A stretch of DNA of 64,000 nucleotides, taken from NCBI RefSeq assembly GCF_000737315.1, contig NZ_JMCB01000002.1, positions 248,001 to 312,000 of the forward strand, read 5' to 3'. Every line of letters begins with the position of its first letter. Positions within the stretch are counted from its first letter, which is position 1. The notes below the pieces were generated by a model. That model ran no database searches. It was not told where the DNA came from and was given only the letters and a program-made list of their open reading frames with translations. The stretch is from Hyalangium minutum (GTDB taxonomy: Bacteria > Myxococcota > Myxococcia > Myxococcales > Myxococcaceae). Below are positions 6,360 to 24,157 of the stretch, one piece after another. Both the position numbers and the translations under genes were made by a program.

Positions 6360-7529
6360 TCAGTGGAACGGAAGGGCCGCGAGCCGCTCCCGGAACATCT
6401 CCAGCGCCTCGCGCAGCTCCACGTCCTCCAGCCCCTCGCCAGGGGCGCGGCGGTGCTTGCGCAGGAAGGCATCGAAGGCCGCCGAGCGGCCATAGAGCTG
6501 GCTCGCCCTCTCCAGGGCCTCCAGCAGCACCCGCTCGGCTCCCGGTGAGCCCAGGTAGAGGTGCATCACGGCCTGCTCCAGCTTCGCGCCGCAGGCCGCC
6601 CACACCGCCCGGTCGTGCACCGTGAGCACCTGGGTGGTGAGCTCCTCGGCCACCCGCTCCAGCACCGCCAAGACCGGCTGCACCGCGCGCAGCAGCACCT
6701 CGCCCTCCACCCGGGGCTCGCGCGCCAGCTGCTGCAGCTGCTCGCGCAGCTCGATCAGGGTCCGCTTGTCGCGGGTGCGCATCGTCAGCGAGGCCGGCAT
6801 CGCCGCGAAGGACGAGAGGCTCTCCTCCACCTGCCGCGCGAGCGCCGGGAGCCCCTCGGGCGCTGTGCGCGCCACCCGCTCGAGCTTGCTCTGCAGCGAG
6901 CGGCGCAGGTCCATCACCGCGCTTCGCAGCCCCACCGCCGCCGCCATCTGCAGCCCGAACCCAGGGACCACCTCTTCGCGGCTCACTGCCTCGAAGGCCG
7001 CCGCCGTCAGGTACACCAGGTCTCCGATTCGCGAGCGGAAGTCGAGGCGGAAGGACTGCAGCTCCGTCATCAGCGCCCAGCGGTCCGTCACCACCTCCGG
7101 GCGGCGAACCCGCTCGCCCAGATCCGCCACCCGCCGCGCCAGCCGCTCCGCGCTCTGCTGGCAGACGGCCTCCACCTCCCGCGCCAGCCGCTCGTCCGCG
7201 CTGGCCGGGGGCGGCCTCCAGCCCGTGTCGCCTCCCGCCGAGCGCTCGGGGGCCGGGAACTGCGTGCGGATGACCGTGATGAGGTGGTTCACGTCTCCCA
7301 GCGTCTCTCCCAGCGCAGGGGCCATGGTCTCCCATAGCGAGAGGTCTGCTCCGTCCGGCTCGGCCGTGGTGGGCTCGTACTTGACGATGCTCAGGTACCC
7401 CAGCCGATCAATGGCCACCGCCGCGGCCCGGTACACCTGCTCCAACTGCTCGGCGTGCTCCCGATCCGTCAGTGCTTCGAGCAGCGCTTCGAGGCGCGGC
7501 GGGAGGGCGTCTTGAGGCGGGCGGGACAT
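6360..7529 (-). CDS. Hypothetical all-alpha-helical protein
   Basis: 389-aa ORF with strong GC3 bias; L/A/E/R-rich; no recognisable motif. Confidence 0.8.
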   Translation of the reverse strand: MSRPPQDALPPRLEALLEALTDREHAEQLEQVYRAAAVAIDRLGYLSIVKYEPTTAEPDGADLSLWETMAPALGETLGDVNHLITVIRTQFPAPERSAGGDTGWRPPPASADERLAREVEAVCQQSAERLARRVADLGERVRRPEVVTDRWALMTELQSFRLDFRSRIGDLVYLTAAAFEAVSREEVVPGFGLQMAAAVGLRSAVMDLRRSLQSKLERVARTAPEGLPALARQVEESLSSFAAMPASLTMRTRDKRTLIELREQLQQLAREPRVEGEVLLRAVQPVLAVLERVAEELTTQVLTVHDRAVWAACGAKLEQAVMHLYLGSPGAERVLLEALERASQLYGRSAAFDAFLRKHRRAPGEGLEDVELREALEMFRERLAALPFH

Positions 7530-7662
7530 GGCCGTGAGCATAGGGATGGGAAAGCTCGGGTATCAGGAACGTCTAACCGGGACGCTACCGCAAGTCCGAG
7601 AAAACCCCTCGATCGAGGCCACGAGCAAGGCTAGACACGGGCGCCTGCCCTCTGGAGCCCCC

Positions 7663-9216
7663 ATGCGCCTGAGCCTTGCTTCCCTTTTGGCCATTCTCTG
7701 TGTCAGTTGCAGCACTACCCCTCCGCCGTCTCCCACGCCTCCTCCGCCTCCCACGCCTCCGCTGTCGCCCGAGGCCACCGCCGTCTTCGCCCGCGCCGAG
7801 GCGCCCGGTCCTGGCGCCGCGCTCGTGGTGAACCTGGACGCCTTCGAGGCGCTGGGGCTCGCGGGCAAGGGGCCCACGATGCAGCAGCTGGCCAGCGTGT
7901 CCACCGCCATCATGTCCCAGCTCTCGACGGCGGAGGGCTCGGAGGGCCAGTTCTTCGCCCGGGGCGCCGTGGTGAGCGCCCTGCTGCGAGACTGGGCGAA
8001 GTGGCCCGGCCTGCGCCGTATTGCCTTCCTCGTCCCCTCGGACCGCGTCCTGGCGGACGGGGCTGGGGTTCTCCCCCAGGTGGCCGTGGGTGCATTGGCT
8101 GTGGATGAGGGCTCTCCGGACAACGCCCAGCTGCTCTCCGCCGTCGTCGCGCTTGTGCGTGCCGCGGCCGTGGAGGTGACACGTGAGGGCGCTGACCCCC
8201 GCGTCGTTCTCCAGGGACAGGACGTGTGCGTGGTGGGGAAGGAGCTGGGCTTCCCGGTGTGCGTCCGTCCCCGGCGCGGGCTGATCCTGTTCGGCACGCC
8301 CACGGCCCTGGGGGCGCTCGAGGCGCTGCCGCCCGTCACCGCACCGGCTGCCGCTCCCGGTGAGGCACCGCTGCTGCTGGGCCTGCGCGTGGATTTGGGC
8401 GCCAAGGGCCGCGCGCGCCTGGCCTTCACCGGCCGCGATGCGGTGCGTCTCGCGCTCCACGTGGAGGGCACCACCGCGAAGGACATCGCCATGGCCGAGT
8501 CCTTGGTGAAGAAGGCGCTCACGGATTACGACGCGCACCAGGCCGAGGTGCGTCAGCGCATCGCCACCGGCCTGTCCGAGGTGCAGCGCTCCATTGCCCA
8601 GGATCCCGCCGCGCCGGCCACGCTGAAGCAGGCGGCCACGGGCCTCACCGCGGACCGGGTGGTGGACGAGAAGGGCTACTGGGCCCAGGCGCGCCAGTCC
8701 GTGCAGGTGTCCTCCACGCAGGACAGCCTCTCCCTGTCGCTCACCGTCCCCGCGGGTGCGGTGAAGGACATGTCCGAGCAGATGGCCTCCGGCGGCACCC
8801 CCGTGGCCCTGGTGGGCATCATGGCCGCCATCGCCATCCCCAACTTCATCAAGTTCCAGGCGCGCGCCAAGCAGTCCGAGGCGAAGATGAACCTCAAGGC
8901 GGCCTATGTCGCCCAGCGCGCCTACGTGATGGAGAAGGACCGGTTGGGCCGCACCTTCGAGGAGATCGGCTTCGCGCCGGAGCCGGGCCGCCGTTACACC
9001 TACTGCATGGGCAAGCAGTGCCTGCCCTGTGACAGGAAGGACTGCAAAGTGGCGCCGGAGCCCTCGCCGTGCCAGGGGCTCACCACGCTGGGCAAGAGCG
9101 CGAATGACAACTTCTCCATCTGCGCGTACGGCAACGTGGACTCGGACGCCGCCTGGGATGTGTGGGTCATCGACAAGAGCGGCGAGCCGGAGAACCTGAG
9201 CAACGACATGGAGTAA
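7663..9216 (+). CDS. Lipoprotein with C-terminal PilA-like type IV pilin domain
   Basis: MRLSLASLLAILCVSC lipobox, Pro linker; C-terminal VGIMAAIAIPNFIKFQARAKQSEAKMNLK..Y..Q......DR......IGFAPE.G.RY.Y closely follows myxobacterial PilA. Confidence 0.85.
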   Translation: MRLSLASLLAILCVSCSTTPPPSPTPPPPPTPPLSPEATAVFARAEAPGPGAALVVNLDAFEALGLAGKGPTMQQLASVSTAIMSQLSTAEGSEGQFFARGAVVSALLRDWAKWPGLRRIAFLVPSDRVLADGAGVLPQVAVGALAVDEGSPDNAQLLSAVVALVRAAAVEVTREGADPRVVLQGQDVCVVGKELGFPVCVRPRRGLILFGTPTALGALEALPPVTAPAAAPGEAPLLLGLRVDLGAKGRARLAFTGRDAVRLALHVEGTTAKDIAMAESLVKKALTDYDAHQAEVRQRIATGLSEVQRSIAQDPAAPATLKQAATGLTADRVVDEKGYWAQARQSVQVSSTQDSLSLSLTVPAGAVKDMSEQMASGGTPVALVGIMAAIAIPNFIKFQARAKQSEAKMNLKAAYVAQRAYVMEKDRLGRTFEEIGFAPEPGRRYTYCMGKQCLPCDRKDCKVAPEPSPCQGLTTLGKSANDNFSICAYGNVDSDAAWDVWVIDKSGEPENLSNDME

Positions 9217-9277: not shown

Positions 9278-12200
9278 ATGAACGTCCGGTCCCGCCGCCG
9301 GCTCATTGCTGGCGGCATCTGTGCGGTGCTCGCGGGAGTCTCGCTCGCTGTTCTCAGCTCGCAGAGGTGTTTGTCCGCCTGGATCTTCCAGGGCGTGAAG
9401 GTGAGGCAGTGCCCGGATGGGCGCTTCCGGCAGACGGTGGGGCTGCAGGTGGATGGGCTGGCCCGTGAGCGCAGCGGCTCCGTGCGCGCCTGGGCCCTGG
9501 CCCATGGCGTGGGCAAGTCCTACAGCCAGGAGCTGCTGGCGCGCATGAAGCCCTCGAAGGCCGAGCTGGTGCTCCTGGATGCCGCGGGCCAGGAGACGCC
9601 GCTGAAGCCCGAGAAGGACTGGAAGCGGGAGGACAACGGAGACCTCTGGGCCGAGCTGAAGCTGCCCGCGCTCCCCGATGGCGACTACCGGCTGCGCGCT
9701 CGCATCACCACGCGCCTGGGCACGGACACCGTGGAGACCGCGCTTCCTTTATATGCACCCGCGCGAGTCCACGTTCTCACGGATCGCCCGCTCTACGAGC
9801 CCGGCCACCGCGTGCAGTTCCGCGCCGTGGCCCTGCGCGCCAAGGGACTGAGCCCCCTGGATGGGCGCCCGGGGACGTGGACGGTGGTGGACCCCAACGG
9901 AGACGTGGTGGTGGAGGAGCGGTCCCCCGCCGGTCCCTGGGGCGTGGTGTCTGGTGCCTTCCCGCTGGACCGCGGCGCGCCCACGGGCACGTGGACCGTG
10001 CGGTGGCTGAGCGGTGGCACCAGCGGAGAGGCTTCCTTCCGGGTGGAGCCCTTCACCCTGCCGCGCTTCCGGGTGGAGGCCTCCAGCCCTCAGGCCTTCT
10101 GGCGCGCGGGTGACGCGCCCGTGGTGGAGGGACAGGTGCTCTACAGCTCTGGAGCGCCCGTCGCGGGCGCGAAGGTGTCGCTGGAGTGGAATCACTTCGG
10201 AGGCTGGCCGCCTCCCACCGAGTGGTTCGATGGAGGCGGGCTGCCCGTCGCGGCGAAGGCGGATGCGGCCGGCCGCTTCCGGGTAACTCTGCCGCGCGTG
10301 CCTCAGGATCTGCGAGGCCAGGTCACGCTCTCCGCCAGCGTGGCGGCCACGGACCCTGCGGGCGATACCGTGCGCGGTGGCGTCTCCCTGCTGCTCTCCG
10401 AGGATGCGCTCGCCGTCTCCGCCGTGACCGAGCTGGAGTCCGGGTTGGTGGAGAACTACAGCAACCGCGTGTTCATCCGGGCCACCACTGCGGATGGGCA
10501 GGCGCTCCCAGGCGCCGAGCTCACCGTGAAGCGCGCGTGGGACCCCAAGGATCCGGGTGTGAAGACAGTGGCGGACGAGGATGGGGTCGCGTCCTTGCAG
10601 CTGGATCCGGGCGTCGCCGTCAACGTCGTTGTCCCCGCCATGCCCGTGCGCCGCAAGCCGCTGCCGAACCCGGTGGAGCTGATGGGCTCGAGTGACCTGC
10701 TCTCTCGCGACGAGGAGGCGGGCCTGGGGGATCAGGTGGCCCTGGAGAAGTGGCTGCCCGCCTTCTTCCCCTGCGCGCGCTTCATCGTCCCCGACTCGGC
10801 GGACACCGACCAGCAGCTGTCCGTCCGGGTGAGCTCCAGCGGAGCGGTGGTGGATGTGGTGGGCGAGCAGGGGCGGCTCTCGGCCTGTCTCGCGGATGCA
10901 GCCCGCACGCGGACGCTGCCTCCGGGGCGCGAGCGCATGCTGAACCTGACCCTGCAGCTCGTGGATCCCCAGCTGCCCACGCTCGGGGTCGAGATGAAGG
11001 CCGCGAACGACGGGCCCGTGGATTCGCGGCTCTATGCGGCGCTGGAAGAGGCGGCCCGTGATGCGCGCCCGTGTCTGCCCGCGAAGCTCTCCGAGGCGTC
11101 CGATGTGCCCGCCACCCTCCGGTGGCGGCTCCGGGCAGGCCAGAAGGATGTGGAGGTGGGGTGGGTGCCCGTCGAGAAGCAGGAAGGCGTCCCGATGCTC
11201 TCCTCCACGGTGCTCTCCTGCCTCCAGGCCCGGTTCTCGCGCCTGTCACTGCGCGATAGCTCGGATGAAGAGGTGGAGGCCTCGGACGAAGAGAGGGCAG
11301 GAGGGACCAAGGCGCAGCAGGACCAGATGGGCGTGGCGCTTCTCACGGCGGAGCCCGCGGAGGGCGATGGAGGCGAGGCTCGGGCGCAGGACACCACGCG
11401 CCTCGGCTTCGAGCTGATGGTGAGCGCCCAGGTGGAGGGCAAGGATGCCGGCTCTACGAAGCTCTTCCTGCCGCCCACGCGGCTGCCCACTCAGCGTCTG
11501 CGCGCCACACCTGCGCTGGCTCGCGCTGGCGAGGAGGTGCGTGTGGAGCTGCTCCGAGGTCCTGGCTTCAGTGGCTCACTGCCAGAGAAGCTCTGGTTGA
11601 GCGCGGGAGGAGAGCGGCTGGAGTCCCAGGTGGATTCGAAGTCCCGCGTGGCGACCTTCCGCCTGCCGGAGCAGTTCGAGGGCTGGGCCCAGGTGGACTG
11701 GGGAACAGCGGTGGCTCGCATCTACGTGGCGCCTCGCGCGCAGCTCTCCGTGGAGGTGGCTCCTGAGAAGCCCTCCTATGCTCCCGGTGAGGTGGCCCGC
11801 CTGCTGCTGCGCACCCGTGTGGATGGGAAGGACGGCCCCGCCGCCGTGGGCCTCTTCGGTGTGGATGAAGGGCTGGCGCAGCTGGCCTCGCTGCCGGGGC
11901 CGGGAGTGCTTGGGAGCCTGAGGCCCGCGCCCACGCTGGTCAGCTCCGCGTTCGGAGTGCTCGATGGACAGGCGCTCGCCATGGGCCGCATCCGAGGCGC
12001 CAACGCCGTGGCGGCCACCCTGCTGCGCGTCAGCTCGGCGCCCACCGTGGAGGAGTCGGACCCATCGCTGTCGCTCACCGCGCAGGCCGCCTTCGAGCCG
12101 GAGGCGGAGCTGACGGAGCCCTTCTACCGGGTGCTCGCTGAGCTGACCTCCCAGGTGCGTGTCTGGGAGGAGAAGGCTCCGGAAGGGGAGACGCTGAGCC

Positions 12201-12415
12201 CCGAGGGCATGGCGAAGCTGTGGGAGCAGGCGCTGGCGGCCTGCGAGAAGCGCGGAGAGCCGGTGACGGATGCCTACGGGCGCCGTCTGAAGCTGTCACG
12301 GCTGCCGCCCGAGCTGCTGGCCCTCACCGATCCCCGCATGGTGGTGGTGGGAGGGACGCGGCTGTCCGAAGACGTCGAGAACTGGGGCCAGTGGGTTGCC
12401 CGGGAGGCGCCATGA
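9278..12415 (+). CDS. Alpha-2-macroglobulin-like protein, N-terminal chain (MG domains)
   Basis: N-terminal TM; MG2 signature VLTDRPLYEPGHRVQFR, FRVEPFTLPRFRVE, and A2M_N_2-like KPSYAPGEVARL...AVGLFGVDEG. Confidence 0.85.
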   Translation: MNVRSRRRLIAGGICAVLAGVSLAVLSSQRCLSAWIFQGVKVRQCPDGRFRQTVGLQVDGLARERSGSVRAWALAHGVGKSYSQELLARMKPSKAELVLLDAAGQETPLKPEKDWKREDNGDLWAELKLPALPDGDYRLRARITTRLGTDTVETALPLYAPARVHVLTDRPLYEPGHRVQFRAVALRAKGLSPLDGRPGTWTVVDPNGDVVVEERSPAGPWGVVSGAFPLDRGAPTGTWTVRWLSGGTSGEASFRVEPFTLPRFRVEASSPQAFWRAGDAPVVEGQVLYSSGAPVAGAKVSLEWNHFGGWPPPTEWFDGGGLPVAAKADAAGRFRVTLPRVPQDLRGQVTLSASVAATDPAGDTVRGGVSLLLSEDALAVSAVTELESGLVENYSNRVFIRATTADGQALPGAELTVKRAWDPKDPGVKTVADEDGVASLQLDPGVAVNVVVPAMPVRRKPLPNPVELMGSSDLLSRDEEAGLGDQVALEKWLPAFFPCARFIVPDSADTDQQLSVRVSSSGAVVDVVGEQGRLSACLADAARTRTLPPGRERMLNLTLQLVDPQLPTLGVEMKAANDGPVDSRLYAALEEAARDARPCLPAKLSEASDVPATLRWRLRAGQKDVEVGWVPVEKQEGVPMLSSTVLSCLQARFSRLSLRDSSDEEVEASDEERAGGTKAQQDQMGVALLTAEPAEGDGGEARAQDTTRLGFELMVSAQVEGKDAGSTKLFLPPTRLPTQRLRATPALARAGEEVRVELLRGPGFSGSLPEKLWLSAGGERLESQVDSKSRVATFRLPEQFEGWAQVDWGTAVARIYVAPRAQLSVEVAPEKPSYAPGEVARLLLRTRVDGKDGPAAVGLFGVDEGLAQLASLPGPGVLGSLRPAPTLVSSAFGVLDGQALAMGRIRGANAVAATLLRVSSAPTVEESDPSLSLTAQAAFEPEAELTEPFYRVLAELTSQVRVWEEKAPEGETLSPEGMAKLWEQALAACEKRGEPVTDAYGRRLKLSRLPPELLALTDPRMVVVGGTRLSEDVENWGQWVAREAP

Positions 12416-14787
12416 AGCGCTCACTGTTGATGTTCATGGCTGGAGTTCTGTTCACCCTGTTCGCCCTGTTCACGCTGGTGTTGTTCGGGGACAGCATCCG
12501 CAGGCTCTTCGGCGCGTCCGCTTCCGCGTTGGCGGGCAACCAAGAGTCCTCCAGCTATTACTCCATGGCTCCGGCAGCTCCCTCGGCCCAGGCCGCGCCC
12601 GAGCCTGCTCCCGTCGAGGCGGAGATGGACGCGTTGGCGGGCGGCGGGGCCAGCAGCGAGCGCATGCGGGGCCTGTCGATGAAGCGCATGGAGACCATCC
12701 AGATCATCAAGGGCACCGGAGGCGCTGCGGCGAAGCCCAAGGTGGCCCTCGCCGAGGGTGGGGCGCAGGCCGAGGCCGCGGCCCCGAGCCGCGCCTGGTT
12801 CCCGGAGACGTTCCTCTTCGAGCCCCTCAAGGTGACGGACGAGTCCGGACAAGCGGTAGTGCCGGTAAAGGTGCCGGACCGGCTGACGCGGTGGCGGGTG
12901 CTGGCGCTGGCGCACTCGCGCTCGGGCGCGCAGGCCGGAGCGGTGACGAGCTTCTCGGGCACACTGCCCACGTATGTGGATCCGGTGGTGCCCGCCTTCC
13001 TGTTCACGGGGGATGCCGTGCGCCTGCCCGTGCAGGTGGTGAACACCACGGAGCAGGCGGTGGAGCAGCCGCTGAAGCTGGTGGCTGATGGCGCGGTGGT
13101 GGAGGGCGCCGCCACCCGCACCGTGCGGGTGCCCGCTCAGGGCAGCGTGGTGGAGTACGTGACGCTGAAGGCCACCCAGCCCGGCCCTGTCTCCTTGCAG
13201 GCCTCGCTGGGCACCACGGACGCCATCGTGCGCAGCTTCGATGTGAAGCCCACCGGCCGCCGGGTGGACCAGTCACGCGCGGGCTCGCTCGCGGCGCCGC
13301 GCACCCTGACGCTGGACGGTGTTGCCGACGCGCAGGCGGGCAGTGAGCGGGTGCGGCTGCAGGTGTTCCCGGGGGCTCTGGGCATGCTGCGCGCGGAGCT
13401 CTCCGCGGCGCCTGGGCGCTGGGGACTGGCGGAGGATGCGTATGCGCTGCTCTTGGCGGGCCGCGCGCCCGAGCTGCTGAAGTCGCTCGGGGAGACGGCG
13501 GATGCCGAGGCCCTCAAGGCCATGGCCTCCTTGTCCGGTCAGCGGGTGCTGCGAGCGGCCCGGGCACCGGATGTGCCCACTGCGGCCCTGCTGGCCCAGG
13601 CTGCACTGCAGCACCCGGACAACCCGGTGCTGTCCCGCCTGGGGGAGCGCCTGTCCGCGCAGGTGGCCAACGCCCAGCGTCCGGATGGCACGTGCCAGGG
13701 CGGGGACGGGTGGACGCTGCAGCGGTTACTCGTGGCCACCGCAGATTGTGCGCAGGCCGTGCGCGCGGGCGCCTCTCTCTCGGTGCCGGGCAAGCAGCGG
13801 GCTGCGGCCTTCTCCGCGCGCGCCATGGGGGCTTTCGAGCGCAACCTCTCGCGCGTGCAGGACGGCTACACCGCGGCGGCCATCCTGGCCAGCGGCGGGG
13901 TGACGGGCTCGCTCCAGGAGGCGTTGCGGGCCAAGGTGCGCGAGTCCTTGAAGAAGCGAGACGACGGCGCCGCATACCTGCCGGTGGAGCAGGGCGTGGT
14001 GCGCGCGGACGGAACGGTGCCGGGGGAGGCTGAAGCGACGGCGCTGGCAGTGCTCGCGCTCACGGGAGACAAGGCGGCGCCAATGGCGGACCTGGGCACC
14101 TCGCTGCTGGCCAGCTACCAGCCGGGGTGGGGCTGGGGGGATGGGCGCACCAACCTCCTGAGCCTCCAGGCCGCGATGGTGCTCTTCTCCGAGCCGCTGC
14201 CCTCACAGGTGCGCGTGGTGCTCGAGCGTGACGGGAAGACGGTGACCGAGGGCACCTTCGACGCCAAGGCCCTGCGGGACGTGCTCTCGATGGAGGCGGC
14301 GGCGATGGGCTCGGCAGGGACGCACACGTGGACGGTGCGCGCGGAGCCGGCGGTGCCTGGCCTGGGCTACTCGCTCACGTTGAGCGCGTACGTGCCGTGG
14401 AAGGCCGAGAAGGGCCAGGGACTGGAGCTGGCGGTGAAGGCGCCCGCCGAGGGCAAGGTGGGGATGCCGGCCGAGGTGACAGTGCAGGCGGCCTCTCCGG
14501 CGGGCATGGCACTCCAACTGCGCTACGCGTTGCCCGCGGGGGTCCAGGTGGACACTCCGAGCCTCGAGCGGCTCGTGGCCGAGCGGAAGGTGACGAAGTA
14601 CGAGGTGGAGGATGGGGCGCTCACGCTCACCCTGCCACCGCGCGGCGCGGGCGAGCCCTTCCAGGCCAGCTTCCGCGTGGTGCCGACGCTGGCGGGGACG
14701 CTTCAGGGAGGGGCCTCCAGCCTCTTCCCCGAGGGGCGGCAGGATCTCGTCTCGTACGTCCCGCCCGCTCAGTGGACGGTGCGCTGA
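12412..14787 (+). CDS. Alpha-2-macroglobulin-like protein, C-terminal chain; no thioester motif
   Basis: Own N-terminal hydrophobic segment; RAWFPETFLFEP..TDESG...VPDRLTRWRV, YVDPVVPAFL..GD.V..PV.V.N. ATGA overlap with the upstream gene; no CxEQ. Confidence 0.85.
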   Translation: MKRSLLMFMAGVLFTLFALFTLVLFGDSIRRLFGASASALAGNQESSSYYSMAPAAPSAQAAPEPAPVEAEMDALAGGGASSERMRGLSMKRMETIQIIKGTGGAAAKPKVALAEGGAQAEAAAPSRAWFPETFLFEPLKVTDESGQAVVPVKVPDRLTRWRVLALAHSRSGAQAGAVTSFSGTLPTYVDPVVPAFLFTGDAVRLPVQVVNTTEQAVEQPLKLVADGAVVEGAATRTVRVPAQGSVVEYVTLKATQPGPVSLQASLGTTDAIVRSFDVKPTGRRVDQSRAGSLAAPRTLTLDGVADAQAGSERVRLQVFPGALGMLRAELSAAPGRWGLAEDAYALLLAGRAPELLKSLGETADAEALKAMASLSGQRVLRAARAPDVPTAALLAQAALQHPDNPVLSRLGERLSAQVANAQRPDGTCQGGDGWTLQRLLVATADCAQAVRAGASLSVPGKQRAAAFSARAMGAFERNLSRVQDGYTAAAILASGGVTGSLQEALRAKVRESLKKRDDGAAYLPVEQGVVRADGTVPGEAEATALAVLALTGDKAAPMADLGTSLLASYQPGWGWGDGRTNLLSLQAAMVLFSEPLPSQVRVVLERDGKTVTEGTFDAKALRDVLSMEAAAMGSAGTHTWTVRAEPAVPGLGYSLTLSAYVPWKAEKGQGLELAVKAPAEGKVGMPAEVTVQAASPAGMALQLRYALPAGVQVDTPSLERLVAERKVTKYEVEDGALTLTLPPRGAGEPFQASFRVVPTLAGTLQGGASSLFPEGRQDLVSYVPPAQWTVR

Positions 14788-14850
14788 GCGCAACTTTCCC
14801 AGGGCAGCCGTGTTTCACCCGGAAGACCCATTTTTCATGGAGCATTCCGG

Positions 14851-15975
14851 ATGGACCGAGCGATGTGGAAGGCCGTGGTGTTCGCGGGAGTCGTGGGGCT
14901 GAGCCTGACGGCGGGGGCGCAGCCTGTGGATGAGCAGGTGAGCGCAGGCTTGGAGTTTCTCGATCCTGAGTTCCGAGGGCTGTCGGCGACGTACCAGGAC
15001 AACAACCGGTGGATATGGCAGGCGCCCGTGGATCCGGTGACGGGAGTCATCCTCTCGTCTCAGCGCCAGCTCATCGACGGCCAGGCCACGTCCCTGCTCG
15101 AGTCCTTCCAGGGGCCCGAGTGGGTCCGAGGCAGCGACCGCATCCTTTATACGAAGACGGTCGACTCCGTTCCCAACCTCTGGATCAAGCGCCCCGGCAT
15201 GTCCCCCGCGCAGATCACCGCGCCGCCTGCGGCTCGCTATCTGCTCACGGGCATCCTCACGTCCCGGGGCACCGTGAAGGTGGTGTACCGCCGCAAGGAG
15301 ACGCTGGCCGGCGGTGGGCTCTCCCAGGGCGTGTACTGGCTGGACACCGCCACGCCTTCGGTCGAGCACCTGCTGCCCGGCGCGGACTTGGGCGTGGCGC
15401 CCGTGAGCTGGATTCCGGGTACTGAGGACCTCGTGTACACCCAGCAGCACGACATGGATCCGGGGCCGAGGGAACAGTGGGTGTCCCAGCTTGTTCGCCT
15501 GTCGACCGCGACGGGGGCCATCACCGTGCTCACGAGTGATTTGGACGCGAAAGAGGACTCCTTCGCGTTCCAGGCGCCGGAGGCGCAGCAGGCGCTGCGC
15601 TATGCGACGGTGGTGAATGGCGGCACCCTGCGAATCTATGGAGAAAGCGCTGCGGCGTGGGTCGACCTGCAGCCCCCATCGCAGCTGGGGTTCATGTACT
15701 CGCCCGAGGTGTTCCAGGCCCGCGACAGCCAGGGCACGGTGCGGACCTATTTCGTGGTGGTGATGCGCGCCAGCACCAACCCAGGGGACGTGGGAGAGGT
15801 GTGGGTGCTTGGCCTGAACGGCAGCGCGCTCCGGGTGGATGGCGGCACCGCGAGCCAGCCGCGCCAGCCGGCGGATCCGGAGGTCATCGCGGGTAGCAGC
15901 GAGATCTTCGTGTACTACAACAACTCGGCGAACCTGGCGCTGTGGCGGAGCCGCACGGGCCTGGCCGTGCCCTGA
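14851..15975 (+). CDS. Secreted beta-rich hypothetical protein (possible TolB-like propeller)
   Basis: Sec signal (LSLTAGA-Q); repeated Trp-containing blade-like segments (PEWVRGSDRILYT, PVSWIPGTEDLVYT). Confidence 0.7.
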   Translation: MDRAMWKAVVFAGVVGLSLTAGAQPVDEQVSAGLEFLDPEFRGLSATYQDNNRWIWQAPVDPVTGVILSSQRQLIDGQATSLLESFQGPEWVRGSDRILYTKTVDSVPNLWIKRPGMSPAQITAPPAARYLLTGILTSRGTVKVVYRRKETLAGGGLSQGVYWLDTATPSVEHLLPGADLGVAPVSWIPGTEDLVYTQQHDMDPGPREQWVSQLVRLSTATGAITVLTSDLDAKEDSFAFQAPEAQQALRYATVVNGGTLRIYGESAAAWVDLQPPSQLGFMYSPEVFQARDSQGTVRTYFVVVMRASTNPGDVGEVWVLGLNGSALRVDGGTASQPRQPADPEVIAGSSEIFVYYNNSANLALWRSRTGLAVP

Positions 15976-15993
15976 GCGGCGCCTCGTCTCTTC

Positions 15994-16779
15994 TCAGCGC
16001 CCCATCAACCACTGGAGCAGCGCTTGAGGGGCATCCACGTGGACGAAGTGGCCGGCCTCCGGAAGCAGGGCCACGGGGCAGCCGGCCGCCTCCATGCGAG
16101 CCGCGTCCGCGTCCGTCACATACCGGGAGCGCCCTCCGCGAATGCAGCGCACCTTCGCGCCTGGGCGCTCCACCGCTGCCCACAGGTTCGTCCCGTTCAC
16201 CCGGCCGTGCAGCTCCGCCAGCGCCTGCCGGTCAAAGCGCCAGCGCACCCCTCCCTCCGGCGTGGAGACGAGGTTCATCACCAGCCAGTCCGCCAGCGGC
16301 TCCGAGAGGCCCTGGCCCGTCAACGCCGCGCGTATCTCCCGGCGGTTGGCGGCGGTCTCGGGCGCCTGGAGCAACACGTTCAGCACCATTCCGCTCTCCG
16401 AGAGGTCCACGGGCACGGGGCTCGGCGAGATGTCGAGCAGCGTCACGCTGGCCACATCCGAGGGTGAGGCGAGGCTGGCCGCGAGCGACACCCGGCCCCC
16501 CAGCGAGTGGCCCACGAGCTCCAGCGGTCCGGTGAGGCCCTTGGCGCGCGCCGTCTCCACCACGTCCCGCGCCATCGTCGTCAGGTCCGTCCCCGGGGGC
16601 ATGGGCAGCGAGCCGCCATGGCCCGTCAGGTCCGGCATCAGGAAGCGCCGGCTCGGATCGGCCGCGCTCCACGCGTTGGCCAGCGAGCGCAGGTTGCGCC
16701 CCGAGCCCAGGAAGCCATGCAGCAGGACGGTGGGCACTTCTCCCTCGCCCAGTTGGAGACTCTCGAGAACCACACGCAC
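15994..16779 (-). CDS. Alpha/beta hydrolase (YbfF-like esterase)
   Basis: LLHGFLGS, GHSLGG nucleophile elbow, LLDISP, AGHFVH; GTG start after GGAAAGGGA. Confidence 0.9.
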   Translation of the reverse strand: MRVVLESLQLGEGEVPTVLLHGFLGSGRNLRSLANAWSAADPSRRFLMPDLTGHGGSLPMPPGTDLTTMARDVVETARAKGLTGPLELVGHSLGGRVSLAASLASPSDVASVTLLDISPSPVPVDLSESGMVLNVLLQAPETAANRREIRAALTGQGLSEPLADWLVMNLVSTPEGGVRWRFDRQALAELHGRVNGTNLWAAVERPGAKVRCIRGGRSRYVTDADAARMEAAGCPVALLPEAGHFVHVDAPQALLQWLMGR

Positions 16780-17399: not shown

Positions 17400-18752
17400 C
17401 TACAGGCCGAACGGATAGGTGTCGGGCGCGTCCTCCTCCTCGTGCCCGGCGTTCGCGTCCAGCGGGTGGACCGCGAACGTCTCGTCATAGTGGACCACCG
17501 CGTCGAACTGCGCGGGGAGGTCCGCCAGGAAGTAATGGCTCCAGCGCTCCGTGCGCGGCGCATACACCACGCCAATGGCCCGCTCCAGCCGACGCTCGCG
17601 CAGGCCCGAAGCCGCCTCGCCCAGGTCCTCCATTCGCAGCAGGAACCGAGGCAGCTCCACCTCATGGAAGAGGTGCTCGTAGCTGCCCGGGATCGCGGCG
17701 CGGATGCGGCGGCGCAGCCCTGGGCCATCCCACTCCTTGGCCGCGATCACCGTGCCCGTGTACGTGGTGAAGCCCACGCTGTAGACGGCCTTCGCGTGCC
17801 GCTCGCGCAGGAGCTGCCCCAGGTTCAGCTCGCCCTGATCCCCGAGCTGCGTGGCCCGCGCATCTCCCAGGTGCGAGTTGTGCGCCCAGATCACCATCCG
17901 CGCGGGCTGGCCCGCCTTGCGCGTCAGGTGCGCCGCCAGCGCGTCCGCTGTGTCCGCCATGTGCGTATCACGCAGGTTCCAGCTGTCGTTCCGGCCCGCG
18001 TACATCGTCCGGTAGTAGGCCTCCGCGTCCTGGGCCAGCCGCGCGTTCTGCTCGGCGAAGAACCGGGCGTCCTCTTCCCGTGCACCCTGGGCCGTGCGGC
18101 GCTGCAGCTCCAGCAGCTGCTCCACCACCGCGTCCTCGCACGTGGCCGAGTAGCCGTACGCCGTGGCGTGTCCGTAGCTCTGCGGATCCGTGCCGAACTG
18201 CTCGAAGCACCCGTACCGCTCACGCGCCCGCTGCGCCGCTTGGGGATCCACCTTCTCCAGGTAGTCCACCACGGCGCGCATCGAGGCGTGCAGGCTGTAG
18301 AGGTCCAACCCGTAGAAGCCGGCTCGCTGCTCCGGAGGCCTCGCCGCGTTGTGCGCACGCATCCAGCGCACCAGCTCCGCCACCTCCTGGTTGCGCCACA
18401 TCCACCGGGGGAAGCGCTCGAAGTTCCCCAGCGCGGACGCTGCCTCCGTGTCGGTTCCCTCGCCCTGGATGAAGGCGTTCACGCGGAGGGCGTCCGGCCA
18501 ATCCGCCTCCACCGCTACCGCCGTGAAGCCCTGCTCGGAGATCAGCCGCCGGGTGAGCGCCGCTCGCAGTGCATAGAACTCATGGGTGCCGTGGGTCGCC
18601 TCGCCCAGCAAGACCAGGCGGGCGTCGCCGATGCCCTCGATCAAGGCATCCAGATCCGAGGCCGTGCCCGTGAGTGGCACGGCGGCTGACTTCACTCCGT
18701 CCAGCAGGGCGGAAGAGATGTCCGGTGTGTCGTCATCGAAAAAGGGGGCCAT
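17400..18752 (-). CDS. Erythromycin esterase family protein
   Basis: LLGEATHGTHEFY, VEADWPD, FPRWMWRN, WNLRDTHM, WAHNSHLGDARAT. Confidence 0.92.
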   Translation of the reverse strand: MAPFFDDDTPDISSALLDGVKSAAVPLTGTASDLDALIEGIGDARLVLLGEATHGTHEFYALRAALTRRLISEQGFTAVAVEADWPDALRVNAFIQGEGTDTEAASALGNFERFPRWMWRNQEVAELVRWMRAHNAARPPEQRAGFYGLDLYSLHASMRAVVDYLEKVDPQAAQRARERYGCFEQFGTDPQSYGHATAYGYSATCEDAVVEQLLELQRRTAQGAREEDARFFAEQNARLAQDAEAYYRTMYAGRNDSWNLRDTHMADTADALAAHLTRKAGQPARMVIWAHNSHLGDARATQLGDQGELNLGQLLRERHAKAVYSVGFTTYTGTVIAAKEWDGPGLRRRIRAAIPGSYEHLFHEVELPRFLLRMEDLGEAASGLRERRLERAIGVVYAPRTERWSHYFLADLPAQFDAVVHYDETFAVHPLDANAGHEEEDAPDTYPFGL

Positions 18753-19087
18753 ACCCTGAAGGTGGGCAGGTGCACGGGGACTGCCCAGCCATGCACCGGC
18801 TGTGGGCGAGCAGGCGAGGGGCGGCTCGCGCCCGTGGGCAGGAGCCATGGATGTCGGACCGAGCCGCTACCCTGCTGTTCATGCGGGAGCACTCCTCGAG
18901 CGTGAACGTGTTGGGTTTCCATCACCCGGCCGATGAACCCGCTGGTCACCTCTGGGGTGGGTGCCCATCGTCGCCATCACTCGGGTCAGCCACGGCAAGG
19001 CAATGGGGAACAGGCCGCCCCTCCTGGACGCTCGCTCGGAGCGAGAGAGGAGGGGGCCGGGCCGTGGGGTGGTGGAGGAGCAGGCAG

Positions 19088-19642: not shown

Positions 19643-20533
19643 CTACTTCTTCCGGAGCACGAAGGTCGTGAGCGGCTTGATGCCGTTCTGCTGCGCGAAG
19701 TGGCCCTGGTTGATGGCGAAGGCCACGCGTCCGCGCGAGTCCACGTACATCAACGGCTTGCCCAGCGGCACGTCGCTGAAGGTGGCGGCGAAGGGCAGGC
19801 GCAGCTCGCGGCCCTTGCCGAAGGTGACGCGCGCCGTGTCGCCGCGCTGGTAGCCCAGCTTCGCCAGCAGGGCGCCGTCCGCGTTGGTGACGAGGTTGCC
19901 GTACGGATGCTCGATGGCGAGCACCGTGCCGTTGAGCGCCGTGTCCGTCAGCTTCGCCTCGGGGATTTCAAGGCGCTTCCACTCGGTGAGCACCGGGCCC
20001 ACCTGCGTCCAGTCATCGCCTCGGGCAATCCGAGCGCCTACGGGAGCGAAGACGTCCCGGCCGTGGAAGGTGGAGGAGAGGCTCGGGGTGAGGTTCCACG
20101 CGGAGTTCGTGAGGTGGCGGACCTCGGTGAGGCCCTCCTGGCGCTCGACGAGGGTGATCAGCCCGTTGTCCGGGAGAACGAAGTACTGGCCGCGCTTCGT
20201 CTTTGCCACGATGGCGCGGCGATCGCTGCCCACGCCGGGGTCGATGACGGTGACGAACACGGTGCCCGCTGGGTAGTAGGGCGCGGTGCCGGCCAGGAAG
20301 CGAGCGCCGTCCAGCACGGAGTAGGGCTCCACATCGTGGGACAGGTCGATGATCCGCAGCCGGGGCTCCAGGCCGAGCATGACGCCTTTGCAGATGGCCA
20401 CCGAGTCGTCCCGCTGGCCAAAGTCCGTCATGAAGACGAGCGTGGGTTGCGCGGGGGCAGCGGGCTCTGCGGCGACGGCCTGAAGTGTGGCGAGGAGCGG
20501 CAGGAGGAGGACGAGGCGGGAGGCCAGGGGCAT
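19643..20533 (-). CDS. SAM hydroxide adenosyltransferase (DUF62; chlorinase/fluorinase superfamily) with signal peptide
   Basis: FMTDFG, DLSH, VIDPGVGSDRR, PDNGL, STFHGRDVFAP, YGNLVTN; N-terminal AVA-AE signal. Confidence 0.88.
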   Translation of the reverse strand: MPLASRLVLLLPLLATLQAVAAEPAAPAQPTLVFMTDFGQRDDSVAICKGVMLGLEPRLRIIDLSHDVEPYSVLDGARFLAGTAPYYPAGTVFVTVIDPGVGSDRRAIVAKTKRGQYFVLPDNGLITLVERQEGLTEVRHLTNSAWNLTPSLSSTFHGRDVFAPVGARIARGDDWTQVGPVLTEWKRLEIPEAKLTDTALNGTVLAIEHPYGNLVTNADGALLAKLGYQRGDTARVTFGKGRELRLPFAATFSDVPLGKPLMYVDSRGRVAFAINQGHFAQQNGIKPLTTFVLRKK

Positions 20534-20660
20534 GGGGGCATTCTGATGGCCAATTCCTGGCATGGGAACACGTACTACTTGAGAGGGTAAACAGGAGACG
20601 GCTTACCCAGGTAAACGAGAGGACGCGCCAGGAGTTCCTGAAATCTCCTCCTGACGCAGG

Positions 20661-21541: not shown

Positions 21542-24157
21542 GTGAAAACGCTCGCCTCCGTCCTTTGTGTCCTCGTGGTTACCGGGGCCATGGCTCAGGC
21601 CCCGGACGCCGGAACTCCCTCTCCCGACGCAGGCGCCCCCACGGGGGTGCTCACCAAGGCTCCCGTCCTCAAGCGTCAGGTCGAGGCGCAGTATCCCCCC
21701 GAAGCCCTCGCGCAGCAGCTCGAGGGCACGGTGGTCATGCTCATCGACATCTCCGAGGCTGGCGCCGTCACGGACGTTGAGGTGACGCAGCCCGCGGGCC
21801 ACGGCTTCGATGAGGCCGCCGTCGCCGCCGTGCGCCAGTTCGAGTTCGAACCCGCCGAGGTGGACAACGTCCCCGCCCCGGTGCGCATCGAGTACGCCTA
21901 TCAGTTCGTCTGGCGCGCCCCACCCCCACCTGAGGGCACCGAGCCCGGGAAGCCTCCGGAGGCCCCGGTGAACTTCAGCGGCCGCGCCCTGGAGCGAGGC
22001 ACCCGCCGCCCGCTTGCCGGCGCCGAGGTGGCCCTGCCCGAGCTGCAGCTCACCACCAGCACGAACGAGGAGGGCCGCTTCTCCTTCCGAGGCGTCCCCG
22101 TGGGCAACCACGAGGTGCTCGTCATCCTCAGCGGGTACGACCGGTTCCGCACCCGGGAGACCATCGCCGAGGGCCAGGAGACGCAGGCCACGTACTACGT
22201 CCAGAGGCGCATCTTCAGCCAGTTCGAGACGGTGGTGCGCAGCGAGCGCGAGCGCAAGGAGGTGACGCGCACCACGCTCCAGGTGGCCGAGATTCAGAAG
22301 GTGCCAGGCACCCAGGGCGACACGCTCAAGGTGGTGCAGAACCTGCCCGGCGTGGCGCGGCCCGCGTTCAACGGCGGCCAGCTCGTCATCCGCGGCACCA
22401 GCCCGAATGACTCGGGTGTGTTCCTCGACGGGCAGCGCATTCCGCTGCTGTACCACTTCGGTGGCTTGACCTCCGTGTACAACTCGGAGCTGCTGGACTC
22501 GCTGGACTACCTGCCCGGCAACTTCTCTTCCTACTTCGGCAACGTCACCGGCGGCGTCATCAACGTGCGCAGCCGCGCCCCGAAGATGGACCGCTTCCAT
22601 GGCACCGTGGGCGTCAACCTCGTCGAGTCCAACGCCGTGCTCGAGGGCCCCATCACCGAGAACCTGGGCATCGCCGTGGCCGGCCGGCGCTCCTACGTGG
22701 ACCTGGTGCTCAAGCTGGTCCCCGAGAACGAGGACGGCCCCTCCATCCAGGTGGCCCCGCGCTACTACGACGCCCAGCTGAAGCTGAACTGGACACCCAG
22801 CAAGCGGCACACCTTCACTCTCCAGGGGCTCACCTCCAATGACACGCTGGGGCTGGTGTTCGACCGGCCCGCGGACCAGGACCCGAGCGTCAACGGCGAC
22901 TTCGAAGTGACGACCGGCTTCAACCAGCTGCGGCTCGGCCACCAGTACAAGGGCGGCGCGCTCACCGTGGAGAGCCAGGGCATGGTGGGCAACACGAAGA
23001 TCGAGTTCACCCTGGGCGATCGCTACCTGCGCATCAACGCGCTGGACTTGGATCTGCGCTCCACCGCCGAGTACACCCTCAGCGAGGCGCTCACCCTGGC
23101 TGCTGGGTTGGACATCCAGTACGCCGACGCCAGCGTGAGGGCGCGCGTGCAGGCTCCGCCTCGCGAGGGCGAGCCCGCGGGCCCGTTGGTGAACGAGGAG
23201 ATCATCACCGCGGACGCGGACTCCTATCAATACTACCCGGGCATCTGGGCCGAGGCGCGTTGGCGCCCGTTCAAGGAACTGCTCGTGGTGCCGGGCCTGC
23301 GCAGCGAGAGCTACCTCTTCGGAGAGCAGAAGGTGAACAAGCGCTCGCTCAACCCACGGCTGGCGGTGCGCTACTCGCTCACGGAGCAGGTGACGCTCAA
23401 GGGAGGCGCGGGCCTGTACCACGGGCCTCCGGCCCAGGAAGAGCCCAACAGCACCTTTGGCAACCCGGAGCTGAAGGCCAAGCGCTCCATCCAGTACAGC
23501 GTGGGCTCCGAGTGGCAGCCCACCCCTGAGTACTTCATCAGCGGCGAGCTCTTCTACAATGACTTGAGCCGCCTCATCGTCAGCTCGGACCGGCTGGTGG
23601 AGCGGGACGGGCAGTTGGTGCCCGAGCGGCTGACCAACGCGGGCACCGGCCGCATCTATGGCTTCGAGCTGCTGGCCCGCCGTGCCCTCACCGAGCGGTT
23701 CTTCGGGTGGGTGGCCTATACCTTCAGCAAGAGCCAGCGGCGGGACAAGCCGGACGCGGCGCTGCGCCTGTTCGACAACGACCAGACGCACGTGCTCACG
23801 GTGATTGGCAGCTACAAGCTGCCCGCGGGCTGGGAGGTGGGCGCGCGCTTCCGCTTCTCCTCGGGCAACCCGCTCACGCCCATCGTCGGCGCCCGAAGGG
23901 ATGACAACACGGATGTCTTCATTCCCGTGTTCGGGCCGGTGAACTCGCAGCGGCTGCCCAACTTCAACCAGTTGGACATCCGCGTGGACAAGAACTTCAT
24001 CTTCGACCAGTGGAGCCTGGATCTCTACGTGGACCTGACCAACGTCTATAACAACCCGGCGAAGGAAGGCCTCCTCTACAACTACAACTACTCCGAGTCG
24101 GCCTTCCTGGAGGGCCTGCCCATCCTGCCGATTTTCGGCGCCAAGGGGAGCTTCTGA
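21542..24157 (+). CDS. TonB-dependent receptor with N-terminal TonB C-terminal domain
   Basis: YPPEA...EGTV....I...G.V..V....GHGFDEAA..AVRQF.F.PA (TonB_C), prealbumin-like domain, plug (LPGV..IRG), beta-barrel ending in F. Confidence 0.92.
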   Translation: MKTLASVLCVLVVTGAMAQAPDAGTPSPDAGAPTGVLTKAPVLKRQVEAQYPPEALAQQLEGTVVMLIDISEAGAVTDVEVTQPAGHGFDEAAVAAVRQFEFEPAEVDNVPAPVRIEYAYQFVWRAPPPPEGTEPGKPPEAPVNFSGRALERGTRRPLAGAEVALPELQLTTSTNEEGRFSFRGVPVGNHEVLVILSGYDRFRTRETIAEGQETQATYYVQRRIFSQFETVVRSERERKEVTRTTLQVAEIQKVPGTQGDTLKVVQNLPGVARPAFNGGQLVIRGTSPNDSGVFLDGQRIPLLYHFGGLTSVYNSELLDSLDYLPGNFSSYFGNVTGGVINVRSRAPKMDRFHGTVGVNLVESNAVLEGPITENLGIAVAGRRSYVDLVLKLVPENEDGPSIQVAPRYYDAQLKLNWTPSKRHTFTLQGLTSNDTLGLVFDRPADQDPSVNGDFEVTTGFNQLRLGHQYKGGALTVESQGMVGNTKIEFTLGDRYLRINALDLDLRSTAEYTLSEALTLAAGLDIQYADASVRARVQAPPREGEPAGPLVNEEIITADADSYQYYPGIWAEARWRPFKELLVVPGLRSESYLFGEQKVNKRSLNPRLAVRYSLTEQVTLKGGAGLYHGPPAQEEPNSTFGNPELKAKRSIQYSVGSEWQPTPEYFISGELFYNDLSRLIVSSDRLVERDGQLVPERLTNAGTGRIYGFELLARRALTERFFGWVAYTFSKSQRRDKPDAALRLFDNDQTHVLTVIGSYKLPAGWEVGARFRFSSGNPLTPIVGARRDDNTDVFIPVFGPVNSQRLPNFNQLDIRVDKNFIFDQWSLDLYVDLTNVYNNPAKEGLLYNYNYSESAFLEGLPILPIFGAKGSF

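Follow-up and report, generated by a model that had tools for sequence, protein, structure and literature searches.

How is an alpha-2-macroglobulin (A2M) family protein to be understood when its two halves lie in two overlapping genes? The question is raised by a stretch of 64,000 nucleotides of high-GC DNA from Hyalangium minutum (contig NZ_JMCB01000002.1, positions 248,001 to 312,000; called the window in what follows), whose closest relatives are Hyalangium and other Myxococcaceae. In the window, the open reading frame (ORF) A at 9278..12415 (+) encodes chain A, a protein of 1045 amino acids corresponding to the static N-terminal half of a macroglobulin, and ORF B at 12412..14787 (+) encodes chain B, of 791 amino acids, which carries a bait-like linker and the mobile 'swing-arm' half. 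The two genes share the ATGA at 12412..12415 (+), in which the TGA stop of chain A (12413-12415) is interlaced with the ATG start of chain B (12412-12414), and a Shine-Dalgarno-like GGGAGG for chain B is found at 12402..12407 (+), inside the end of chain A and 4 nt 5' of the ATG; the overlap is read as translational coupling. Chain B opens with MKRSLLMFMAGVLFTLFALFTLVLFG, continues with a low-complexity stretch rich in Ala, Pro, Gly, Glu and Met, and reaches RAWFPETF at residues 127-134 (nt 12790-12813). A first-pass annotation of the window had read the locus as an A2M-family protein encoded as two genes, and Pfam, alignment and fold matches on both chains agree with this; the chain A stop at 12415, the ATGA overlap, the hydrophobic start, the Ala/Pro/Met stretch and RAWFPETF were all recovered at the same positions. 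In Pfam, chain A matches MG2 (E 1.8e-18, residues 163-256), CarboxypepD_reg and, weakly, A2M_BRD (814-869), and chain B matches A2M (PF00207, E 5.8e-15, residues 133-218) with a start just after RAWFPE, while in public annotation the two halves go under different names, 'MG2 domain-containing protein' and 'alpha-2-macroglobulin family protein'. On the whole, the analysis shows a conserved two-chain form of bacterial A2M, encoded by two genes and without a thioester, and the two-chain architecture is well supported.

The evidence that carries this conclusion is the conservation of the split. A genome scan yielded 22 related loci in Hyalangium, Archangium-like metagenome-assembled genomes, Corallococcus, Myxococcus and Pyxidicoccus, and the junction is readable in 20 of them. 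In all 20 the chain A stop and the chain B start overlap as ATGA or GTGA, within a retained ...GGGAGGCGCC[A/G]TGA..., and the stretch 5' of the overlap, ...CCCGGGAGGCGCC..., is nearly unchanged, with the GGAG core present in 20/20. Homologues of chain B number 758 at E <=1e-3, a count matched by the 776 homologues of chain A. Among the 120 matches listed for each chain, nearly all full-length chain B homologues have 766-819 amino acids, the handful of shorter ones being mostly marked partial or located on short contigs, and the chain A homologues have 1010-1046 amino acids nearly throughout, with few partials. An exhaustive HMMER search with chain B through 1.84 billion cluster representatives (50% identity) gave 213 matches below 1e-30; the full-length entries in the top 150 are stand-alone chain B proteins, mostly of ~710-825 amino acids and down to 30% identity, the exceptions being seven with extra N-terminal domains and one further protein, P0244. 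In six distant metagenome loci, with identities of ~30-50% for chain B and 34-37% for chain A where measured, a chain A gene of ~1000-1044 amino acids (or its 3' end at the contig cut) lies directly upstream of chain B, and the stop/start overlap in the distant loci L023-L027 and L029-L031 is of 4 nt or 1 nt (ATGA, TAATG or TGATG). For the ATGA as well as the TGATG/TAATG junctions, the frame of chain B is -1 relative to that of chain A. No genuine fused A-B gene was found among the related loci, homologues and cluster representatives examined.

These results bear directly on two readings in which the split would be apparent only. One is that an ordinary single-chain A2M gene has been mistaken for two, through a frameshift error of sequencing or assembly or through recent decay to a pseudogene, and its support is one database protein, P0244 (1801 amino acids), which looks like an A-B fusion. 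In P0244, an out-of-frame Arg-rich stretch replaces the C-terminal domain of chain A and runs straight into an intact 'MKRTGIASLLLIAALSPSFGC...' chain B start (the MKRTG... signal sequence); since the out-of-frame stretch reads into an intact chain B signal start, P0244 is itself the frameshift artefact, not the split, and was rejected as a fusion. Conservation across genera, and in more than 200 homologues per chain, extends to the split itself and to the ribosome-binding site, start codon and N-terminal export signal. With the conserved junction, the N-terminal signals and the analysis of P0244 taken together, the frameshift or pseudogene reading is refuted, and we regard its probability as negligible. 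The first-pass annotation had argued against a sequencing frameshift and had asked if orthologues keep the same split point or if close relatives carry one fused ORF: the same junction recurs in the 20 readable loci and the six distant metagenome loci, the split is kept in every informative locus, and the sole 'fusion' is the artefact P0244. The other reading, that programmed -1 ribosomal frameshifting near the junction yields a fused A-B protein besides or in place of the separate chains, draws on the -1 frame of chain B, which stays free of stops for a certain length 5' of the start. In high-GC DNA, though, long open alternative frames are to be expected from chance, and by eye no X XXY YYZ slippery heptamer occurs in the last 60 nt of chain A; moreover, the ribosome-binding site and start codon of chain B are conserved, and signal-anchor and lipobox sequences work only at an N-terminus. 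Programmed frameshifting is thus very improbable, if slightly less so than an artefact.

Where does the break fall in the A2M architecture? Chain A supplies MG1-MG5, the first half of MG6 and a linker-plus-helical domain, and chain B supplies an anchor, the linker, RAWFPETF, the second half of MG6 and MG7-CUB-TED-MG8. Upstream of the break, a profile of the C-terminal third of chain A matches residues 820-861 (QLSVEVAPEKPSYAPGEVARLLL...AAVGLFGV) to the C5 beta chain at 551-594 (E 0.004), a segment that comprises the MG6-beta strands ~60 residues before the end of the beta chain. Downstream of it, chain B residues 119-232 align to human A2M 698-811 (E 3e-9), in a match that opens with the RxxFPETW segment, and residues 126-228 to 705-807; we take this human segment, from 705, to follow the bait directly. 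Alignment to E. coli YfhM and YfaS, which had been proposed as a check, gave weak yet positionally consistent matches around the post-bait motif: hhalign places chain B 121-347 on YfaS 872-1083 (E 1e-4) and chain B 142-254 on YfhM 977-1089, with probabilities of 6-55% for chain B against the single E. coli sequences, and aligns chain A with YfaS at E 2e-10. A sequence search of chain B against bacterial A2M structures gave no match at E <1. The experimentally defined baits of MagD (847-853; PMC5764988) and of E. coli A2M, ECAM (923-942; PMC4498604), precede the aligned motif by 20-40 residues, a distance that puts their counterpart in the C-terminal part of the chain B linker. Human A2M has its bait-region domain, first the static LNK and then the mobile bait, between MG6 strands 4 and 5 (PMC13069473). 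Because chain A aligns to MG6-beta and chain B to the post-bait segment, the gene break most probably lies inside the bait-region insertion of MG6, at the LNK/bait boundary. The confidence of the AlphaFold2 models is lowered at chain A 820-873 and chain B 126-160, as would be expected of two half-sandwiches, each modelled in the absence of its partner chain.

This position modifies the first-pass reading. That the split lies at the bait region holds insofar as the break appears to map to the bait-region insertion and not outside it, yet the break is at the upstream edge of the bait region and not within the flexible segment. The further description of the protein as 'genetically pre-cleaved' is only partly right, and is misleading because the whole disordered, hypervariable bait-like segment is intact on chain B, chain A ending in a folded helical domain, and only the attachment of the N-terminal end of that segment is changed, to the membrane instead of chain A. 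A protein broken at this topological point may, besides, still have a latent native state, as C3, C4 and C5 do.

Chain A begins with MNVRSRRRLIAGGICAVLAGVSLAVL, which has four Arg on its N-side, and its signal-anchor helix at 9287..9364 (+) covers residues 4-29, after RSRRR, in agreement with an AlphaFold2 helix at 4-29. No lipobox is present on chain A, the N-terminus of which is a transmembrane (TM)-like helix. By the positive-inside rule, the four N-side Arg point to an N-in topology, and an N-in signal anchor followed by an oxidised periplasmic body would fit this start together with the invariant Cys of chain A (C31/C45, C499/C537 and C599/C648). The AlphaFold2 model (predicted local distance difference test, pLDDT, of 85) consists of successive MG beta-sandwiches, interrupted by an alpha/beta insertion after which two more beta domains follow. 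The insertion, at 10673..11257 (+), residues ~466-660, lies between MG domains, is modelled as two beta-alpha-beta-like repeats and carries the four invariant Cys C499, C537, C599 and C648; we know of no equivalent in the canonical A2M, C3 or ECAM architectures. In a PDB search residues 163-300 align to MG2-MG3 of A2ML1, A2M, CD109, C5, C4 and YfhM, and Foldseek matches chain A to C3, A2M and CD109 at E 1e-23, as well as to C5 and ECAM, with a target-normalised TM-score (TMt) of up to 0.48 against isolated C3/C5 beta chains. The first half of the MG6-like domain, which gave the C5 beta-chain profile match, is at 11735..11860 (+), residues 820-861, and is followed at the LNK position by the linker-plus-helical domain at 11861..12412 (+), residues 862-1045, with AlphaFold2 helices at 941-966 and 975-991. 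The high conservation of this C-terminal domain reaches the last residue (…RLxEDVENWxxWVxxExP*), also in loci whose overall identity is as low as 34-37%, and the LNK-position region is ~115 amino acids longer than the LNK of C3, which we take to be of ~68 amino acids. A profile search against the PDB gave no structural or family match for it beyond the MG6-beta segment. The helical domain is a candidate docking site for chain B.

In chain B, the disordered and hypervariable linker, rich in Ala, Gly, Pro, Glu and Met and bait-equivalent in position, spans 12538..12777 (+), residues 43-122. AlphaFold2 gives disorder (pLDDT <50) over residues 34-135, with 31-40 per 10-residue block in the linker. 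Its length is ~95 amino acids here and 85-125 in the related genome loci, and the distance from anchor to motif is 95-154 residues across homologues. Linkers of homologues have a mean pairwise identity of 11%, as against 85% for the AP[ST]RAWFPETFLFE motif and 62% for the body. Overrepresented residues are Ala, Gly, Pro, Glu, Lys and, seven-fold, Met (4.9% vs 0.7%); the linker contains neither Cys nor Trp, and residues 34-135 as a whole are without Cys. Short motifs are scattered in it, namely SA.ALAG (58/213), [KR]x[ILM][KRQ]xFG (28/213), EG[KR]MGKK (14/213) and [KR][KR]xxx[IV]Q[IV]I[KR]G (15/213; MKRMETIQIIKG in the window), besides Gly runs in 84 of 213. By analogy, the disorder, hypervariability and position of the linker are properties of A2M baits. 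The second half of MG6 starts with the invariant APSRAWFPETFLFEPL motif at 12778..12825 (+), residues 123-138; AP[ST]RAWFPETFLFE is invariant in the related loci, and R127, W129, F130, P131 and E132 are invariant among 66 sequences.

The body of chain B continues with the rest of MG6, then MG7 and the first CUB half at 12826..13368 (+), residues 139-319; a TED-like, all-helical domain without thioester at 13375..14184 (+), residues 322-591, modelled with pLDDT >90; and the second CUB half with a C-terminal MG8/receptor-binding-like domain at 14206..14784 (+), residues 599-791. The AlphaFold2 model, built with the 66-sequence alignment, has a pLDDT of 82 and places beta domains at 160-319 and 599-790, and residues 698-778 match the MG8 of C5 by profile (E 2.5e-5). 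The top Foldseek matches are isolated C5/C3 alpha chains (E 4e-32 to 1e-31), and the query-normalised TM-score (TMq) is higher for native C3/C5 (0.36-0.39) than for C3b (0.27). The MG7-CUB-TED-MG8 module is kept complete and highly conserved, while the CxEQ thioester is absent from chain B and is found anywhere in just 1 of 270 homologues.

The first-pass annotation had also given chain B a membrane anchor of its own, and the comparison upholds an N-terminal export or anchor segment, which is a TM-like helix here and a lipoprotein signal or polytopic domain in distant relatives. The hydrophobic anchor or signal is at 12412..12489 (+), residues 1-26, with a Kyte-Doolittle 19-residue maximum of 2.5, and AlphaFold2 models a helix at 2-34. 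In every Myxococcaceae locus chain B starts with a basic N-terminus followed by a hydrophobic core of 18-23 residues. Comparison of 270 chain-B-like proteins, the N-termini of which could be scored in 225, shows a TM-like start in 125; among the rest, short lipoprotein-type signals prevail, above all in distant homologues (e.g. MIWLLLGC, MRWTLLLLAGC and MISILLLAAC). Seven homologues carry long N-terminal extensions. Among them, P0311 (L023-L025) and P0326 have a polytopic membrane domain of ~400 amino acids in place of the simple anchor. P0304, P0372 and P0376 (L027) were seen to have other N-terminal domains of 300-400 amino acids, some with TAGQAQFGSFY, reminiscent of ExbD/TolR. In the extended loci with context (L023-L025 and L027), chain A lies directly upstream with a 4-nt overlap. 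The membrane attachment of chain B thus appears to be conserved while the device varies, and conserved attachment is what an independently exported second chain requires. Between anchor and linker is the juxtamembrane motif DSIRRLFGASASALAG at 12490..12537 (+), residues 27-42, with the semi-conserved consensus (D)xxR(R/K)LFG(A/M)SA(S/D)ALAG, which contains AXA signatures; its SA.AL.G part occurs in 58 of 213 chain B linkers. This motif is possibly a signal-peptidase AXA site or a docking motif.

How does the pair compare with known members of the family? The structural features by which the A2M superfamily is defined, i.e. a series of MG domains, the PF00207 motif domain and the CUB-TED-CUB-MG8 module, are present, while a pair of overlapping ORFs, at this locus and at every related one examined, takes the place of the single precursor typical of the superfamily. 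The CXEQ thioester is absent also from some accepted members, such as C5 and MagD. Closest among bacterial proteins are those of type II (MagD, YfaS), which, as predicted for this pair, are periplasmic and associated with the inner membrane, and which likewise are without thioester and have a bait-type segment shortly before the A2M-domain motif; of the bacterial proteins compared by hhalign, YfaS matches both chains best. Once its bait is cleaved, MagD holds the protease in a non-covalent trap, and the two MagD fragments do not come apart (PMC5764988). Where two genes with an anchor each are found here, MagD and YfaS consist of one chain of ~1500 amino acids, encoded in a six-gene mag/yfa operon (DUF2138, DUF1175, DUF2300, DUF2135), as seen in E. 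coli, and they lack the extra alpha/beta insertion and the longer LNK-position domain of this chain A. The yfaS pseudogene of E. coli K-12 (L032, 3799-8403) was considered as a split analogue and rejected, as it is one ORF of 1372 amino acids interrupted near the C-terminus and not in the bait region.

In topology, the pair appears to resemble complement C3, C4 and C5, where the break comes after the first MG6 strands and LNK and before the second half of MG6, so that one MG domain is built from both chains; by Foldseek, chain B is similar to the alpha chains and chain A to the beta chains, and C5 is likewise without thioester. In complement, one precursor is cut by proteolysis and disulfides join the two chains that result, whereas here the genes are separate, bacterial, and encode membrane-anchored proteins with neither an anaphylatoxin nor a C345C domain, the disordered linker being in the position of the anaphylatoxin. 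With type I (E. coli YfhM/ECAM, Salmonella SaA2M) the pair shares the architecture of MG-ring, bait-region domain (BRD), CUB, TED and C-terminal MG, the inner-membrane anchoring facing the periplasm, which is predicted here, and Foldseek and hhalign matches. The type I bait domain is inserted in one MG domain, which is MG8 in ECAM (PMC4498604). In contrast to this pair, ECAM, a lipoprotein of 1653 amino acids in one chain, possesses the thioester (CLEQ) and has pbpC for a partner, the gene order yfhM-pbpC being observed in E. coli. Here chain A is without lipobox and a second anchor is present on chain B instead of the single lipoprotein anchor; no transglycosylase/transpeptidase match was found among the window ORFs flanking the pair, and no such gene is conserved in the related loci. 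Similarity to type I is also weaker than that to YfaS or to eukaryotic A2Ms. Human A2M and A2ML1 give the best PDB sequence matches for both chains (MG2-MG3, and the post-bait RxxFPETW), and their LNK/bait boundary is the probable place of the gene break here, but they are single-chain, secreted, tetrameric or monomeric proteins with a thioester and a bait covalently continuous with LNK. As a separate observation, L030 carries a canonical single-chain A2M of 1615 amino acids (11340-16187 (-); MG2, A2M_BRD, A2M, TED_complement, A2M_recep) ~1 kb from the split pair, which shows that the two forms coexist. Neither a split bacterial A2M nor any A2M of myxobacteria was found described in the searchable literature, in which the founding survey of Budd et al. 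2004 was not covered.

Overall, the locus is best explained by a two-chain, doubly anchored, thioester-less A2M that acts as a non-covalent, MagD-like protease trap of the periplasm, and we consider this explanation moderately probable. Both chains would be exported separately by Sec with N-in topology, and, at the periplasmic side of the inner membrane, would come together through completion of a shared MG6 sandwich, giving a heterodimer with the same chain topology as the beta and alpha chains of complement C3/C4/C5. In the terms used in PMC13069473, chain A would be the static MG1-6/LNK framework, and chain B the bait with the MG7-CUB-TED-MG8 swing arm. The linker of chain B would serve as bait, its N-terminal end being held by the membrane anchor and not by LNK; a protease cutting it would free the N-terminal stub of chain B and let MG7-CUB-TED-MG8 rearrange, while the complex would stay on the membrane through the anchor of chain A. 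By family membership, from which alone the function is read, protease trapping is most likely, and the bait-and-trap mechanism is what we infer by reasoning from it.

Several points weigh against this trap. The complementation of MG6 by the two chains is read from weak profile matches (E 0.004; hhalign 6-55%) and lowered pLDDT, and the binding of A to B as well as the inhibition of proteases are predictions. A canonical A2M bait joins two parts of one chain, and the cutting of a linker tied only to a membrane anchor is not obviously a trigger; the linker could be just a tether. None of the mag/yfa partner Pfam families occurs among the neighbours in the window or the called genes of the distant loci, and the AXA signatures in SA.ALAG might lead to release of chain B from its hydrophobic segment. 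From such points a different function can be drawn, in which the linker is only a flexible spacer between anchor and globular body, and the protein, instead of a bait-triggered trap, could be a constitutive periplasmic shield, scaffold or binding protein. With the linker joined to the membrane anchor rather than LNK, cutting it would remove no intramolecular restraint; the missing thioester, the missing mag-type partner genes, and the scattered short conserved motifs and Gly runs, which suggest binding sites or spacers over promiscuous cleavage sites, speak in the same direction. Set against this, hypervariability and disorder exactly at the bait position are a hallmark of A2M baits, the complete MG7-CUB-TED-MG8 swing arm is retained at high conservation, and MagD, which is also thioester-less, still traps protease after bait cleavage (PMC5764988). 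We hold a mere spacer to be unlikely. A somewhat less likely departure concerns only the hydrophobic N-terminus of chain B, which may be a cleavable Sec signal peptide; mature chain B would then be soluble and periplasmic, would start near ALAG, and would be held at the membrane only through chain A. The conserved SA.ALAG, located 8-15 residues past the hydrophobic core and with two AXA signatures, is what such a cleavage would look like, and it counts against double anchoring. The core of 18-23 residues is nevertheless TM-like and longer than typical signal-peptide cores, Arg-Arg stands between it and SA.ALAG, and AlphaFold2 gives a single continuous helix at 2-34. In addition, distant relatives use lipoprotein signals or polytopic domains, so that membrane attachment itself appears to be conserved, and the lipobox variant P0120 retains SANALGG after its lipid-modified Cys. 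We find a signal peptide rather improbable for these reasons, and retain the doubly anchored trap as the preferred explanation.

As for the neighbourhood, strict synteny covers only chains A and B. A divergent gene at 6360..7541 (-) encodes a helical, cytoplasmic-looking protein of 393 amino acids without signal sequence or Pfam match, which lies beside chain A in 16 of the 22 related loci. Just upstream of chain A, an ORF of 562 amino acids at 7528-9216 (+) has a lipoprotein-like N-terminus, a Pro-rich stretch and a domain of ~400 amino acids without family match; a C-terminal PilA-like domain matches NCBIfam typeIV_PilA_Myxo (E 4e-31), with the pilin helix internal and without the GFTLIE prepilin-peptidase site. 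This PilA-like ORF is found upstream of chain A in the Hyalangium-clade loci only, and the downstream ORF of 374 amino acids is unique to the window among the related loci. Further downstream are genes of the erythromycin-esterase family (17400-18848 (-), E 1e-131) and the SAM hydroxide adenosyltransferase family (19643-20563 (-)), and one for a TonB-dependent receptor with an N-terminal TonB_C (21542-24157 (+)), all three without synteny with the A2M pair outside close relatives.

How a cut in the bait is turned into a large-scale rearrangement of proteins of the A2M family is still under debate: one proposal is that the disordered bait becomes untethered (PMC4498604), and a 'plug-in-channel' idea is unconfirmed (PMC13069473). 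A large natural family that is discontinuous at the LNK/bait boundary means that backbone continuity there is not needed for folding, and the static framework (chain A) and the bait with the swing arm (chain B) can be separately expressed, mutated and mixed. At the level of genes, the pair also parallels what complement C3, C4 and C5 achieve after translation by beta/alpha processing. More tentatively, and with doubt prevailing, the bait of this A2M may be uncoupled from LNK and the static framework and tied to the membrane instead; latency would then come from the membrane tether, or from docking of the chain B stub on the helical domain of chain A, and not from backbone continuity, and the trap would be set off when a protease that had broken into the periplasm cut the tether. 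If true, this would be a two-component, complement-like surveillance device evolved independently in bacteria, and a ready-made 'nicked' A2M in which to study how bait cleavage is transmitted to the swing arm, i.e. the 'plug-in-channel' question. To the two bacterial A2M types the pair adds a third by genomic setting, which is devoid of thioester, mag operon and pbpC and was seen here mostly in myxobacteria of predatory, protease-secreting habit.

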